From: Heteronotia binoei | Lineage: Eukaryota | Assembly: GCF_032191835.1 (NCBI RefSeq) | Contig: NC_083228.1 | Location: 114,452,001 to 114,516,000, forward strand | Reading direction: 5' to 3' | DNA length: 64,000 nt | Shown here: one piece after another, positions 32,354-39,349 of the stretch | Layout: each line of letters begins with the position of its first letter | Numbering within the stretch: position 1 is the stretch's first letter | Made by a program: the position numbers and the translations under genes | Notes under the pieces: generated by a model | What the model was told of the DNA's origin: nothing | Seen by the model: the letters and a program-made list of their open reading frames with translations, nothing else | Databases searched by the model: none

Positions 32354-33098
32354 AAGCCCTCTTCCTGACCACAGAGTTGCCTTCAGAACTGGTAGTTCCA
32401 TGCATATAACATATAGTTTGCGCTTTAATGTTCACTCCAGGTGCCGAAACTATGTAAAAGTTGCCTCTGAGGTACTGCTTAGCAAAACTAGGCAGACTTC
32501 CAAACTATCGTCTAATTTCAGAGTTTGTATAATAGAATGTTTTCAGGGTGTAGATGCTTTGAATAATATTTAGCCGACAAATTATGTCAGGGTTTTTACT
32601 GTCCCAATGACACGTCCCCTGACAGTATTATTCTCTAAGAGACGGAATTGGAAGGCATTAAAGCGTGCTGTATGGAAAGATGAAAAACAAATATTAATTT
32701 CCAGACTTGGTATTTGCACAAAGCCAGACTACAGAGCGAACAATTTCTATTTAAATCTGAATAACATTGACTCATGACAAGGACCATTCAAATGGATTTG
32801 AAGGGCAAAACTATGAGCTACAGTTATGGAGATTTTGTGATTGTGCCCTCTGTTACCAGGAGTGTGCCATGTACCAAAATGGCATAATTTTGCATGCCAA
32901 AATTGCATGTTCCTGGTTCAGGCTGTAATCCTAAAGATACTTCCCTGGGAGAAAGCCCCAGTGAGAACAAGGGACTGACTTCTGAGTAGATCTTCTAAGG
33001 ATTGCTCTGATTAAATGTTGTTGGCACTAAAAAAAGCAACTATCCTTTGTGATGGCTTCATGTTCCATTAAAAATCCAATATTCATTTAAAACTCTCT

Positions 33099-33307
33099 GG
33101 GGGGGTGGGCTCCCTCTGGGTATCCTACCCCCCCAGGGAAAGTGTATGCGCAATACATAGCCTCTCCTCTCCCGGTGTAGTGAATGCCGCGTGGTCACTG
33201 TCTGGCTATGCCTGGCAGATGGTCACTGCAATGGCCTCTCCTGCATTACTGCATCCGTAGCAACACCTTCTCGCTGGTCCCCCCCGTTTTTCACAGAGTT
33301 TGCTACG
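33099..33307 (+). ncRNA. Predicted HDV-like (CPEB3-type) self-cleaving ribozyme at the RTE 5' end
   Basis: P1 33099-33105 (G7) / 33279-33285 (C7); P2 33256-33263 / 33300-33307; P3 ACC 33265-33267 / GGT 33276-33278; L3 TTCTCGCT; P1.1 C33270-G33286; J4/2 CAGA with C33294. Folded by eye and not tested. Confidence 0.75.
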
Positions 33308-33925
33308 TCATGGTGCGACCGAATTGTCCGGCGGTATAACCGGATGGGCAGGCTGGGCCCACCAACCTTGCCAGCCTAAGAGAAGGAAAACTCTAACATC
33401 AAACCCGGGCAGATAGAGCTCGTTAATGTAACACCTACCACCTGGAGGACTCGCTGCCGGCGTCCCGGCTTACTGGGCCATGGCAGATGACCCCCAGGTG
33501 AAAGGGTGGAGCCAGTACCACGCACACTGGGCTTCACCTAAAAAATTCCTCTGCGCAGGCCTGAAGGGCATATCCACATACACAACCCACAATGCATCAA
33601 GTCCTGCAGCGATGGGCAAGGGGCGAAACGGCAGGTGGAAGGTGCCACTGGAAGCCGCAGTCCCGATCCTGCATGTAGGCGGTTCAGGGTATTGGTCGCC
33701 TGATGCTAACCCGGAGACGAAAGCATTTTTCGGCAGCACCCTGAACGACCAAGCAGCCTTATCTAGGGACAGCACTGCTTGCTCCACACGGAGAGGGGCC
33801 TAGAAAAGGTGGCCTAAACAAAGCTCGTCTCCTCCACCCCAGTTGGCTAGCCGCGGTCAACGGGCATCCTTACTTGCGGTCAAAAAATAACAACAAAGAA
33901 AAGGCATGCACCTGCCTCACAAAGT

Positions 33926-36900
33926 GTGCAAAGACTAAAGCTTGCGTGTTGGAACATCAGAACCATGCTTGACACAGTAGACAGTGGTCGCCCTGAACGA
34001 CGCTCTGCTCTTGTTGCCCACGAACTTCTCAGGTTGAATATCGACATAGCAGCTCTCAGTGAGGTCCGTTTCCCTGAGGAAGGTAGTCTTCAAGAACACA
34101 GTGCTGGCTATACCCTCTACTGGTCAGGTAAGTCAAAGGCTGAGAGCCGCCTTTCTGGCGTTGGCTTCATGGTCAGGAACTCCATTGCCTCCAAACTCGA
34201 AAACCTGCCAACAGGTCACTCAGATCGCATCATGTCCATGCGCCTCCCACTTCAAAACAAGCAGCATGCAACACTCTTCAGTGTGTATGCCCCAACCCTT
34301 CAAGCAGATCCTGCAGAAAAGAACAAGTTCTATGCTGATCTACACAACCTCGTACGGAAGACCCCTACAGAGGACACGGTGATCATCCTTGGCGACTTCA
34401 ATGCCAGAGTAGGTAAAGACTCGGAAGCCTGGAAAGGAGTACTTGGCAAACACGGCATTGGCAACTGCAATGACAACGGGCGCCTCCTGCTAGAATTCTG
34501 CATGGAGCACCAGCTCACCATCACCAACACTATCTTCCAGCAGAAGAACAGTCTGAAGACAACCTGGATGCACCCACGGTCCAAGCACTGGCACCTTATC
34601 GACTACATTCTGGTGCGCCAGAGAGACCTTCAAGATGTCTTACACACCCGAGTAATGCCCAGTGCAGAATGTCATACGGATCATCGTCTTGTACGCTGCA
34701 ATCTCCGTCTTCACTTTAAACCCACACGCAGGAGAGGAGGTATCCCTCGGAGGAAGTTTCAGGTTGGCAGTCTCCAGTCAGCCGAAGTTAAAGCTGCCTT
34801 CCAGGCAAAACTCCAGTCAAGAATTGAGGACCCCAGTTGCCCCACAGACCCTTCTCCAGAAGCACTCTGGGAACACCTAAAAACTACCGCCCTGCAGATC
34901 TCTGAAGAAGTCCTTGGGTTCTCCACAAGGAAGAACAAGGACTGGTTTGATGAGAACAATCAAGAGATCCAAGATTTACTGGCGAAAAAGAGATCTGCCT
35001 ACCAAGCACATCTTGCTCAGCCCTCCTGTCCTGGGAAAAAAGCAACCTTTCGCGCTGTATGTAGCAACCTCCAGTGCAAGCTTCGAGACATTCAGAACGA
35101 GTGGTGGACCAAGCTTGCTGAGAGAACCCAGCTGTGTGCAGACACTGGTGATTTAAGAGGGTTCTACGAAGCCCTGAAGGCAGTATATGGTCCATCATAT
35201 CAGACTCAGAGTCCCTTGCGTAGTGCAGACGGCCAAGTGCTCCTCACAGACAAGGCATCCATATTGAACCGGTGGTCGGAGTATTTTCAGGTTCTCTTCA
35301 GTGCCAACCGCGTAGTTCAAGATTCAGCAATTCACCTCACCCCACTTCAACCAGTGAAAACAGAGTTGGATGAGATCCCCACTCTAGAAGAGACTGTTAA
35401 AGCCATCAAGCAACTGAAAAGTGGCAAGGCAGCAGGAGTTGATGGAATTCCACCAGAGATCTGGAAGCATGGGGGCACAGTACTACATAGCTCACTTCAC
35501 AAAGTACTTGTCACCTGCTGGGAACAAGGCAAATTACCACAGGATTTTCGCGATGCAATCATCATCACCCTATACAAGAACAAAGGGGAAAAGTCAGACT
35601 GCTCCAACTACCGGGGGATAACCCTGCTCTCCATCTCAGGCAAAATCCTTGCCAGAATACTCCTGAACAGACTGGTGCCCGCCATTGCAGAAGAACTCCT
35701 CCCAGAGACCAGTGCGGCTTCAGAGCTAACAGGAGCACCACCGACATGGTATTTGTTTTCAGGCAGCTCCAAGAGAAATGCAAGGAACAGAACAAGGCTC
35801 TGTATGTGACTTTTGTCGACCTTACCAAAGCTTTCGATACCGTTAGCAGGAAAGGCCTGTGGCAAATCTTGGAACGTTTAGGATGTCCCCCAAGGTTCCT
35901 CAGCATGATCATCCAGCTACACGAAGACCAGCGAGGCCAAGTCAGACACTGCAACGACCTCTCGGAGACCTTCCCAATAGGCACAGGTGTAAAGCAAGGC
36001 TGCGTTCTCGCGCCAACTCTCTTTATGATCTTCTTTAGCATGATGCTTCAAAGAGCCGCAGTAGATCTAGATGATGACGATGGTGTCTACATCTGCTATC
36101 GCACCGATGGCAGCCTGTTCAACCTGAGGCGACTAAAGGCCCACTCCAAGACAATGGAAAAACTCATCCGAGAGCTACTGTTTGCTGATGATGCTGCACT
36201 CGTCTCCCACTCGGTATCAGCTCTGCAGCATATGACGTCCTGCTTTGCAGAGGCTGCCAAGCTATTCGGCCTAGAAGTTAGTCTGAAGAAGACAGAAGTT
36301 CTCCACCAGCCTGCACCCCAGGAAGATTATCACCCTCCCTGCATCACTGTGGGTGAATCAATTCTGAAGACAGTCCAGCAGTTCAGCTACCTGGGGTGCA
36401 TCATCTCCTCAGATGCTTAGATCGACAAGGAGATTGACAACAGGCTGGCAAAGGCAAACCGTGCCTTTGGCCGACTGCACAAAAGAGTGTGGAGCAACAA
36501 GCATCTGAAAAAAGGCACAAAGATCAATGTTTACAAAGCGGTTGTGATGACAACCCTCATCTACGGCTCCGAATTGTGGGTTTTATACCGTCATCACCTG
36601 CGACTCCTTGAGCGCTTTCATCAGCGCTGCCTTCGCACCATCCTCAACATCCACTGGAGTGACTTTGTGACCAACACTGAAGTTCTCAAGCGGGCGGAGG
36701 TTACCAGCATCGAGGCACTGCTGTTGAAGACGCAGCTGCGCTGGGCAGGGCATATTTCTAGGATGGAAAACCACCGCCTTCCCAAGATTGCCCTGTATGG
36801 CAAACTCTCCACCGGCCATCGAAATAGAGGGGCACCAAAGAAGAGGTACAAGGACTCCTTGAAGAAATCCCTTGGCACCTGTCGCATCAACCATCACCAG

Positions 36901-37149
36901 TGGTCTGACCTAGCCTCAGATCGCAAAGCATGGAGGCACACCATCCACCAGGCTGTTTCTTCTTTTGAGAACGCATGCATAGCTGGTCTTGAGGACAAAA
37001 GGAGATTGAGGAAGAATCGCACTGCTACAGCACCAACCCTAAATCAGACTTTTCCCTGCAGCCACTGTGGCCGGACCTGCCTGTCCCGCATTGGTCTTGT
37101 CAGCCACCAGCGAGCCTGCAGCAGACGTGGACTATTGCACCCTTCTTAA
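33926..37149 (+). pseudogene. RTE ORF: APE endonuclease + reverse transcriptase + C-terminal C2H2-like finger; disrupted
   Basis: EN motifs LGDFNARVG, HLIDYILV, TDHRL; RT motifs FVDLTKAFD, GVKQG, LLFADD; finger CSHC..SHQRAC. A 1-nt deletion at ~35708 breaks PESQCGFR, and an in-frame TAG lies at 36418-36420. Confidence 0.95.
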
Positions 37150-37834
37150 ATCTTCGTTCGCGAAGCCAAGCTGAGAGACCCCACCATTCTTGCCAAAGTG
37201 GTTCGTAATAGCGGGTCAAGATGCACTGGCATGGACCACTAAGCCCTGACTGGCTAAATCCAAGAGGGGAAATAATTTCATTTAGCTCAAGAGTTAGAAA
37301 AAATACTTTTACTTACTATACTAACTTGTTCATTTGAACAATAAAGTTGGGTCTAACAAGGCTCCCAAACTCTTAACAGAGTCAGTCCATCAGACTCACC
37401 CTATTGAGGATGTCCCCTCTGGAACTAGAAACATCTCCATCTTCATGGCTGGGTTTGGTTCCAGCTTGCTATCCCTCAGCTACTTGACCACAGCATCTAT
37501 GTACCTGCCTAGGCTGGAAAAATAATTTCTGGAGGGTTATTTAAAGAACTGTAGATTTGGACAATCTCATTCAGTGCTTTTTTGCAGCTACGGTATTAGA
37601 AAGCTTGGGAGAAAATACAGATCTATGAATAGTTGAATGGATCTTCTCCCTGCAGAAATCCATTGCTTGAACACAGGAAAAAGGACTGGAAACAAAGTTC
37701 CTCCTATGAGTCTTTGTCATCTATTAATAGTTGGCAAAGTGACTTCATGAAAATGATCGAGGGGGAGACTTGTTCTTCAGATGGCGTTCATCAGGAGATA
37801 AGACTGGAACATTTCAGAAATGGAGGGTGCCAGC

Positions 37835-38050: not shown

Positions 38051-38415
38051 GTGCCAGCACAAATCATCTTCTGAACAGTGGTTAAAGTTCAGAAAAATAG
38101 GATTCTCACCAGTGTCCTCAAGAGAAGTTCCAGTGTTAAATTAAGCTTCTGTAATTCTGCAGCCATGTAATGTACCTCATTTGCTAGTAGCTAGCTGTTC
38201 ATGGGGAGTGCTGCATATGTTGTAGCAAACACAAAACGGGGGGTATCATTATATGACTGAAGAGGGGCAGTTGCCAAGGCAATTGAGTGGCTACTTTTCA
38301 GAACCCTGGGGGCGGAACAAAGCTAGTGAGAAATCGGTATCATACTGATTTCTCACTAGCCTTGCTCCACCCCCAGGCTTCTGTTTTCCCCAGCACAAGC
38401 AATCGATTTCCCATG

Positions 38416-38845: not shown

Positions 38846-39349
38846 ATCGTTCTGATGAGTCTCTACTCTTCAAAGTTTCCCAAGGGCTGGCAACTCTAGA
38901 GCCAACTCGTATTTTCATCAAGGACAATGAAAGCATCACAAGATGCCATGACATTCATATTGATTTCTCTTTAGCATTGTTCTGCCCCCAGGCTTCTGTT
39001 TTCCCCAGCACAAGCAATCAATTTCCCACCAGTTGCTTTGTGGGCACATTTTGATGCACAGCTCCCTTCAGTTCCCCTCATGGTTTTGTAATGTGTGTCT
39101 TTTAAGGATTAAGAAACCGTGAGGAGAATTGGAGGGAGCTGGAGGAGAACTGCCAAAATGTGCCTGCAGAGCAACTGGTGGGAAATCGAGGGGAAACAGA
39201 AGCCTGGGGGTGGAACAATGCTAAAGAGAAATCAATATGAATGTCATGGCATCTTGTGATGCTTTCATTGACCTTGATGAAAATACCAGTAGGCTCTAGA
39301 GTTGTCAGCCCTTGGGAAACTTTGGAGAGTAAAGACTCATCAGAACGAT
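38846..39349. repeat. Long imperfect inverted repeat (foldback), ~240-bp arms
   Basis: ATCGTTCTGATGAGTC (38846) pairs with GACTCATCAGAACGAT (to 39349); complementarity continues inward to a ~30-nt spacer near 39085-39113. Confidence 0.92.

Follow-up and report, generated by a model that had tools for sequence, protein, structure and literature searches.

The element at the locus

The window (the whole stretch of 64,000 nucleotides analysed here) contains an RTE-type LINE copy whose 5' part carries the elements of an HDV/CPEB3-like ribozyme fold (Table 1). The element encodes APE (Exo_endo_phos) and RVT_1 domains. Its 3' limit at 37178 is the point at which matching ends in hundreds of genomic copies; there is no A-tail at this end, and a search at this copy for a target-site duplication of at least 5 nt found none. 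The defining features of the RTE clade are present, namely a single long ORF with an N-terminal APE followed by RT, a length of about 3-4 kb, frequent 5' truncation and the lack of a poly(A) tail, and related elements encode a single protein of 1055-1062 aa. Indirect support for this placement comes from the source names of relatives, 'craniofacial development protein 2' and 'endonuclease-reverse transcriptase', names such as the former being typical of RTE-derived sequences.

Table 1. Coordinates of the element and of its ribozyme-like 5' segments in the window
Feature	Position	Strand	Remarks
RTE-type LINE copy	33098-37178	+	about 4.08 kb; young, high-copy; terminal 5' G-run lost; ORF2 broken
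Spacer T	33098	+	first element-derived base here; divides the 5'-terminal G-run from the second run in full-length copies
First J1/2 hairpin	33099-33134	+	GGGGGGGTGGG (33099-33109) with CCTACCCCCCC (33124-33134), 11 bp; MFE folds
Structured J1/2 domain (long hairpin)	33174-33255	+	MFE fold; partly conserved in L033, L089 and L038
P2, 5' strand	33256-33263	+	CGTAGCAA; pairs with 33300-33307
P3 and L3	33265-33278	+	ACC (33265-33267) with GGT (33276-33278), closing L3 TTCTCGCT (33268-33275)
P1, 3' strand	33279-33285	+	C7
G38, U39 and linker	33286-33293	+	G38 forms the lone P1.1 pair with C33270; 6-nt linker replaces P4
J4/2	33294-33297	+	CAGA; C33294 in the catalytic-cytosine position
P2, 3' strand	33300-33307	+	TTGCTACG; pairs with 33256-33263
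ORF2 remnants	33926-37149	+	three frames
ORF2 remnant, APE	33926-35809	+	
ORF2 remnant, RT	35746-36420	+	
ORF2 remnant, C-terminal part	36487-37149	+	with Cys/His motif

In comparison with an ORF-intact copy, the window copy has a 1-nt deletion after 35708. Its broken ORF2, together with the absence of the 5'-most G-run found in full-length copies, points to a dead, slightly truncated insertion in which the ribozyme core is intact and the proper substrate strand appears to be missing. Shortly before the element's 3' end, the C-terminal part of ORF2 (37060-37125) encodes a Cys-X2-Cys ... His-X3-Cys motif (..SHCGRTCLSRIGLVSHQRAC..).

In the 2.63 Gb genome at least 1532 5'-end candidates and at least 7561 3'-end candidates were found at 99-100% identity, more than 1800 copies bear the head, more than 100,000 ORF fragments of the family were flagged, and an uninterrupted 1099-codon ORF2 frame is present in at least 43 genomic copies. 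The 99-100% identity of the copies, the many ORF fragments and the intact frames indicate that the family is very young. Beyond this genome, relatives of ORF2 at 60-80% identity occur in fish, shrimp, sea urchin, bird, molluscs and amphioxus. This patchy distribution among hosts suggests horizontal transfer of the RTE lineage and fits the horizontally mobile RTEs known from marine animals (PMC7846101). ORF2 relatives at 69-80% identity were seen in teleosts, penaeid shrimp, a sea urchin, a manakin, sea slugs and many metagenome contigs. An exact DNA pattern across the ribozyme had no match in the JGI metagenomes; a protein-based metagenome scan yielded 80 related loci.

The predicted ribozyme core in the window copy

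All of the pairings proposed in the initial annotation were found in place when positions 32900-33600 were read, including the perfect complementarity between G7 at 33099-33105 and C7 at 33279-33285 that had been listed as P1. The segments follow the HDV-type order P1-J1/2-P2-P3-L3-P3'-P1'-P1.1-(P4)-J4/2-P2', a nested double pseudoknot, and the core nucleotides of HDV ribozymes are present: U20, C22 and G25 in L3, G38 (G33286), and the catalytic C of J4/2 (C33294) within CNRA. The G1-U37 wobble is missing, position 37 being a C of the C7 run in this genome's family; U37 is present in the relatives L033, L038, L089, L090 and L113, and the wobble is not obligatory for every HDV-like family member. 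A P4 helix is likewise absent, the GU being separated from the catalytic C by only 6 nt. Positions 33285/33286 (C37-G38) form a CpG, and many dead copies in the same genome read ...CCCCCCCA or ...CCCCCCTG there. These changes are what methyl-CpG decay would produce, and the TG form recreates the canonical G1-U37 wobble.

In the unconstrained MFE structure of the window copy P2 is retained, as is a long hairpin within J1/2 (about 33174-33255), in agreement with the earlier claim that J1/2 folds on its own. In MFE folds the G7 run and the TGGG that follows it pair locally with CCTACCCCCCC in an 11-bp hairpin that sets C33128-33134 opposite G7. Forcing P1 in the window copy costs about 8 kcal/mol relative to the unconstrained fold, because the hairpin at 33099-33134 must break. 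This hairpin is kept in an older subfamily, with a U-A to U-G change.

A covariance-model search had been proposed in the initial annotation. Rfam cmscan of the window, at 10 kb and at 241 nt, and of the P4-less relatives L113 and L090 returned no HDV-family match, even at E<=10 on short stretches. This null is uninformative for the P4-less form, since the models can accommodate neither the pseudoknot nor a J1/2 of 150 nt nor a missing P4. The models used were RF00094, RF00622, RF02682 and the drz-Agam families, whose accessions we take to be RF01787 and RF01788.

Conservation and covariation

Homologous 5' heads were picked by BLAST of the 5' regions of related RTE elements (ORF2 identity 47-80%), without a structural criterion. 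Those of L033 (ORF2 identity 80%), L038 (71%), L089, and L113 with L054 keep all of the helices with compensatory changes, and in total 13 lineages keep the segment order and the pairings in the same manner. As MAFFT alignments misplaced the core in L033, L089 and L038, pair tables were computed by script instead. P1 takes the forms GGGGGGG/CCCCCCC (window), GGGGGGU/GCCCCCU, GGGGGC/GCCCCU and GGGGGG/CCCCCU, and the 3' strand in relatives, which reads GCCCCCT, GCCCCT, CCCCCT or ACACCT, is in each case complementary to the first 6-7 nt of its own element. Pair 7, G-C in the window, is U-G in L033 and L038; L089 has pair 6 the other way round, as C-G. P3 is ACC/GGU in the window, ACG/CGU in L038, GCC/GGC in L113 and GCC/GGU in L089. 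Among the forms of P2 are CGUAGCAA/UUGCUACG, CAACCUUCAG/CUGUUGGUUG and CCACCACAC/GUGUGGUGG; four unrelated yet complementary sequences are found in all, those of L038, L113 and L090 being wholly different, and when the strands were swapped between sequences at least 6/7 pairs were formed in only 5 of 156 combinations. Compensatory changes across the relatives are found in each of P1, P2 and P3, the three helices for which the initial annotation had proposed a covariation test.

Six lineages share an L3 of the form UUCNCGY(U). In every one of the six P4-less lineages P1 is followed by GU and a variable linker of 6-8 nt replaces P4. J4/2 fits CNRA throughout the 13 lineages, which differ in its N (CAGA, CUGA, CGGA, CAAA, CGAA and CUAA). 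J1/2 is between about 40 and about 165 nt long. Not all of the relatives have the ribozyme head; among close relatives, in the contigs at hand, L031/32, L034, L035, L036/37, L039 and L040 have other or truncated 5' heads.

The 80 metagenome loci were also searched with a strict descriptor (P1 of 6-7 bp with G as its first base, P3 of 3 bp, L3 UNCNNGN(N), G after P1, CNRA, and a contiguous P2 of at least 8 bp), which replaced a relaxed version allowing a P2 defect that had proved too permissive (13 antisense loci). It matched 9/80 loci in the sense orientation, all of them upstream of ORF2, against 0/80 antisense and 0.15/80 per set in 20 dinucleotide shuffles, so that the descriptor signal is enriched on the sense strand. 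Six of the nine loci (L050, L057, L059, L070, L076 and L095) are HDV-like in the classical manner: GG comes after P1, L3 reads UCCACGN or UCCUCGU, and the energies of the P4 hairpins run from -6 to -27 kcal/mol. In L104, a compact relative, the alignment covers the whole of the Rfam HDV_ribozyme model (36.4 bits, E=0.06, below the gathering score of 50). These classical P4-bearing loci and the alignment of L104 place the putative window ribozyme at the reduced end of a series that runs within one RTE clade.

Compensation is also seen between copies of the same genome. RNA reads pointed to the variants 33259 A>G and 33304 T>C, at positions that are partners in P2. Genome-wide pattern counts gave A...T in 1291 copies and G...C in 552, with G...T in 11 and A...C in 6, i.e. 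only 17 mixed pairs. The switch from A-T to G-C was probably a single evolutionary event dividing two subfamilies, which otherwise differ within the core at the variable N of L3 and in the linker.

G-run heads and the RNA's 5' end

The initial annotation had taken G33099 as the exact 5' end of the element and had placed the ribozyme cut between T33098 and G33099. Comparison with other copies supports neither position. Most alignments begin at T33098, and about 85% of sampled full-length copies reach 5-16 nt further 5' with one or two extra G-runs. In 24 of 30 near-identical copies the run matching 33099-33105 is preceded by one or two extra (G)nT units, and the single-run copies, the window copy included, are all preceded by T (4/4). 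In 100 heads drawn by a nearly unbiased pattern, about 86 have at least one further G-run, about 8 have a single run (preceded by T in 6/8) and 5 have one long run. A clean start at a run of 7 G or fewer, with neither a preceding T nor an extra run, was found at 0/30 loci and in at most 2/100 heads. The 5' ends do not pile up at G33099, where the initial annotation had proposed to look for such a pile-up; the paired segments are conserved. In full-length copies and in relatives the flanks diverge at the 5'-most G-run, which the window copy is without.

L140 and L141, two copies with intact ORFs, carry two and three G-runs, and in their unconstrained MFE structures a long-range helix joining an upstream G-run to C7 of the core occurs together with P3 and with the hairpin of the second run. 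P1 of these intact copies thus comes from a G-run that lies upstream of the position corresponding to 33099. The GGGGGGU P1 of L033 and L038 aligns by length with the first G-unit and not with the second. On these folds 33099-33105 is most likely the arm of the first J1/2 hairpin and not the P1 strand; the true P1 strand has probably been lost from the window copy, the simplest cause being reverse transcription that ended 6-8 nt short.

The spelling of the heads is informative as to their origin. That of the older G...C subfamily is fixed as G7-A-G4-T-GGGCTCC, and heads ending C-GGGGG-T-GGG-T-GGGC or T-GG-T-GGGGGG-T-GGGC are found again at unrelated loci, in step with the 4T/5T linker variants. 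An A or C that recurs at the same position in the head is not remade each time, which argues that the heads are copied from RNA, and inheritance of the heads in turn puts the RNA's 5' end at the 5'-most G-run. The extra G-runs could nevertheless be partly new, arising from slippage of the reverse transcriptase. The G/C homopolymers permit register slippage, and which G-run serves as P1 cannot be fixed from sequence alone.

The heads are arrays of G-runs split by single T, A or C residues, with sub-subfamily-specific spelling and an outermost run of variable length (window 33098-33109; L002-L030 and L120-L141). Such an array suggests that the substrate strand has repeatedly been duplicated by slippage and lost by truncation. 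With the GGG at 33107-33109 and 33118-33120 it could also form a G-quadruplex.

Expression

In three raw-read RNA-seq runs from one organism the element is covered at low depth and about equally in both orientations, while the flank at 32950-33089 has no reads in the sampled data. A pile-up of read 5' ends was sought in the three runs and none was found; a few reads cross the G-rich heads into other flanks. The idea that the window copy might cut host pre-mRNA finds no support here, there being no transcription of the flank in the sampled reads of the three runs.

A model for 5' processing and its alternatives

Pairings, covariation and the descriptor search support the identification of an HDV/CPEB3-like double pseudoknot at the head of an RTE-type LINE. 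We consider it probable, though with appreciable room for doubt, that the 5' head of the family is an HDV-like self-cleaving ribozyme that uses the 5'-most G-run as P1, and that the window holds a truncated copy of it. From the pairings, their covariation, the structure of the heads and the fold energetics we infer catalysis, the position of cleavage and the cause of the truncation. Read-through transcription, on which RTE elements depend, would come first. P1 would then fold with the core, aided by the structured J1/2, and the phosphate 5' of G1 would be attacked by means of the J4/2 cytosine. The cut, just 5' of the terminal G-run, would leave a 5'-OH element RNA beginning with P1, and this released RNA would serve translation and target-primed reverse transcription; the role in 5' processing of the element RNA that had been predicted for the ribozyme gains support at the level of sequence. 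In intact copies the 5'-most G-run would be P1 and the second run would close the first J1/2 hairpin with C33128-33134. The ribozyme would be of a reduced HDV type, in which P1 is rich in G/C and 6-7 bp long, J1/2 is structured and spans about 150 nt, P2 has 8 bp and P3 has 3 bp, L3 is UUCUCGCU, P1.1 is a single C-G pair plus U/U as in CPEB3, P4 is missing and J4/2 is CAGA. In the window copy reverse transcription would have stopped short, with loss of the 5'-most G-run and a start at T33098. The model is weakest at the C, not U, opposite G1, in the slippage that homopolymers allow, in the absence of an Rfam match for the P4-less form and in the absence of an RNA-seq 5'-end pile.

An alternative that we regard as unlikely, but worth weighing, keeps G33099-33105 as the working P1 with a cut at T33098/G33099; the upstream runs would be integration junk removed in the next round, or the second run would be a spare P1 by which truncated copies stay cleavable. 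The perfect complementarity of G7 to C33279-33285 is in its favour, homopolymer strands would let either G-run pair, and in R2 the junction additions are regenerated at each insertion (PMC3774820). Such a reading is difficult to reconcile with the near absence of clean starts (0/30 fetched loci, at most 2/100 heads) and with heads containing A or C that recur at independent loci and track subfamilies, i.e. are inherited. The local 11-bp hairpin moreover beats this P1 by about 8 kcal/mol, and the P1 of L033/L038 matches the first unit by length.

It is less likely still that the head is a non-catalytic pseudoknot of the 5' UTR (for example a reverse-transcriptase binding site or an IRES-like structure) and that an internal promoter with its start in the G-run sets the 5' ends. 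HDV-like folds of R2 are known also to bind protein and support translation (PMC6765202), uncleaved junction reads occur in the RNA-seq data, and position 37 is C and not U, all of which such a structure could accommodate. Yet the nucleotides that define catalysis (U20, C22 and G25 of L3, G38 and the C of J4/2) are kept in 13 lineages while the helices covary, the compact relative L104 scores on the Rfam HDV model, and related RTE ribozymes have been reported to be active (PMC4908430). As for a chance look-alike with no conserved structure, to which low-complexity G/C homopolymers and the want of an Rfam match might give some colour, it is refuted by the covariation in three helices, the descriptor enrichment and the compensatory subfamily of 552 copies, and we give it next to no credence.

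Relation to known ribozymes

HDV-like ribozymes are established on R2, L1Tc, baggins and RTE elements (PMC6765202; PMC7761336), the RTE examples including those of Ruminski et al. 2011, cited in PMC6765202. The closest comparison is with drz-Agam-2-1 of Anopheles, an RTE ribozyme that structured J1/2 domains speed up (PMC4908430). Like the heads described here it lies at the 5' terminus of a promoter-less RTE-type LINE, folds as a nested double pseudoknot with a large structured J1/2 and presumably releases the element from co-transcripts. The window family differs in having no P4, one P1.1 pair and a P2 of 8 bp, not 12 bp, and is known here from sequence.

The combination of a long J1/2 with almost no P4 had been called an unusual architecture, but both traits have already been described in R2 ribozymes of silkmoths (Bombyx mori and other Bombycoidea), which have an exceptionally long J1/2 and no P4 stem, P4 being dispensable, while the abalone ribozyme has a 5-nt replacement for P4 (PMC3774820). 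As in the silkmoth ribozymes, the region of L4 and J4/2 conserves little beyond the catalytic C and one A. Unlike the present element, R2 is site-specific, has a restriction-like endonuclease and takes the 5' strand of P1 from 28S rRNA, whereas P1 of the window family is made from element-encoded G-runs in an APE-type RTE.

With the mammalian CPEB3 ribozyme, whose P1.1 is one G-C pair plus U-U (PMC4836649), the window family shares a G-rich P1, a P1.1 of G-C plus U/U, U20, C22 and G25 in L3, and CNRA as J4/2, and the relatives L089 and L090 also carry A23, giving L3 UUCACGU. The CPEB3 ribozyme differs in its P4 hairpin, short J1/2, single-copy intronic position and G1-U37 wobble. The head in the window belongs to a LINE present in many copies, lacks P4 and drew no CPEB3 match from Rfam; it falls outside this class. 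What we take to be the CPEB3 sequence has the same L3 as L089/L090 (UUCACGU), the same P1 as L089 (GGGGGC/GCCCCU) and the same GU after P1, the core of L089 being nearly identical to it. It is conceivable, though very improbable, that the P4-less heads with a single P1.1 pair and UUCNCGY form one lineage that moved horizontally among aquatic animals and vertebrates, an intronic head being ancestral to the mammalian CPEB3 ribozyme. Genomic HDV (RF00094) has the same topology, a 7-bp P1, a 3-bp P3 and an 8-nt L3, and the relative L104 aligns to its full model; L3 of the window presumably differs at one position from the HDV UCCUCGCU. HDV is unlike the window ribozyme in its two-pair P1.1, its P4 and its short J1/2, and the window sequence scores nothing on the model.

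No description of this RTE family or of a vertebrate RTE ribozyme was found in the literature covered, outside which Webb 2009 and Ruminski 2011 fall. Ribozyme-bearing RTEs and the P4-less form with a long J1/2 are already published, and this family is one more example. It would add to the ribozyme-processed RTEs a family of very high abundance, with numerous intact-ORF copies in a genome that is large and presumably vertebrate, and it offers a natural series within one RTE clade, from compact P4-bearing forms to P4-less forms with a 150-nt J1/2, that is useful for the study of peripheral-domain substitution. The G-run heads show inheritance, duplication and loss of a ribozyme substrate strand at LINE 5' ends. 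For the window copy itself the message is negative: it is truncated and frame-broken, and transcription of its flank was not seen in the sampled reads.

Other features of the 5' UTR and 3' flank

Downstream of the ribozyme core a non-coding block at about 33440-33560 (CTCGCTG...CCCAGCTTGCTAGGCCATGGCAGATGAAC...AAAGGGTGG...GCGCAGGC) is conserved at the nucleotide level, and is kept even in relatives with different or missing 5' heads (upstream regions of L031-L040). An ATG-initiated frame in the block is not kept open, with a stop in L033. The block may be an RNA element or an internal promoter. A tandem module of about 60 nt (...ggcagg...tctaggaNaaggaaaaNtctgatNtNaaacc...), present in one to several copies, occupies 33330-33420 of the window and occurs also at 280-480 of L031, 1-130 of L032, 300-480 of L038 and 380-800 of L039; its varying copy number indicates that these 5' UTRs are modular and evolve fast. 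Beyond the element, two long near-perfect hairpins at 38284-38395 and 39031-39178 give sub-threshold Rfam matches to assorted miRNA families (34-37 bits against gathering scores of 64-105), and are probably remnants of inverted-repeat transposons.
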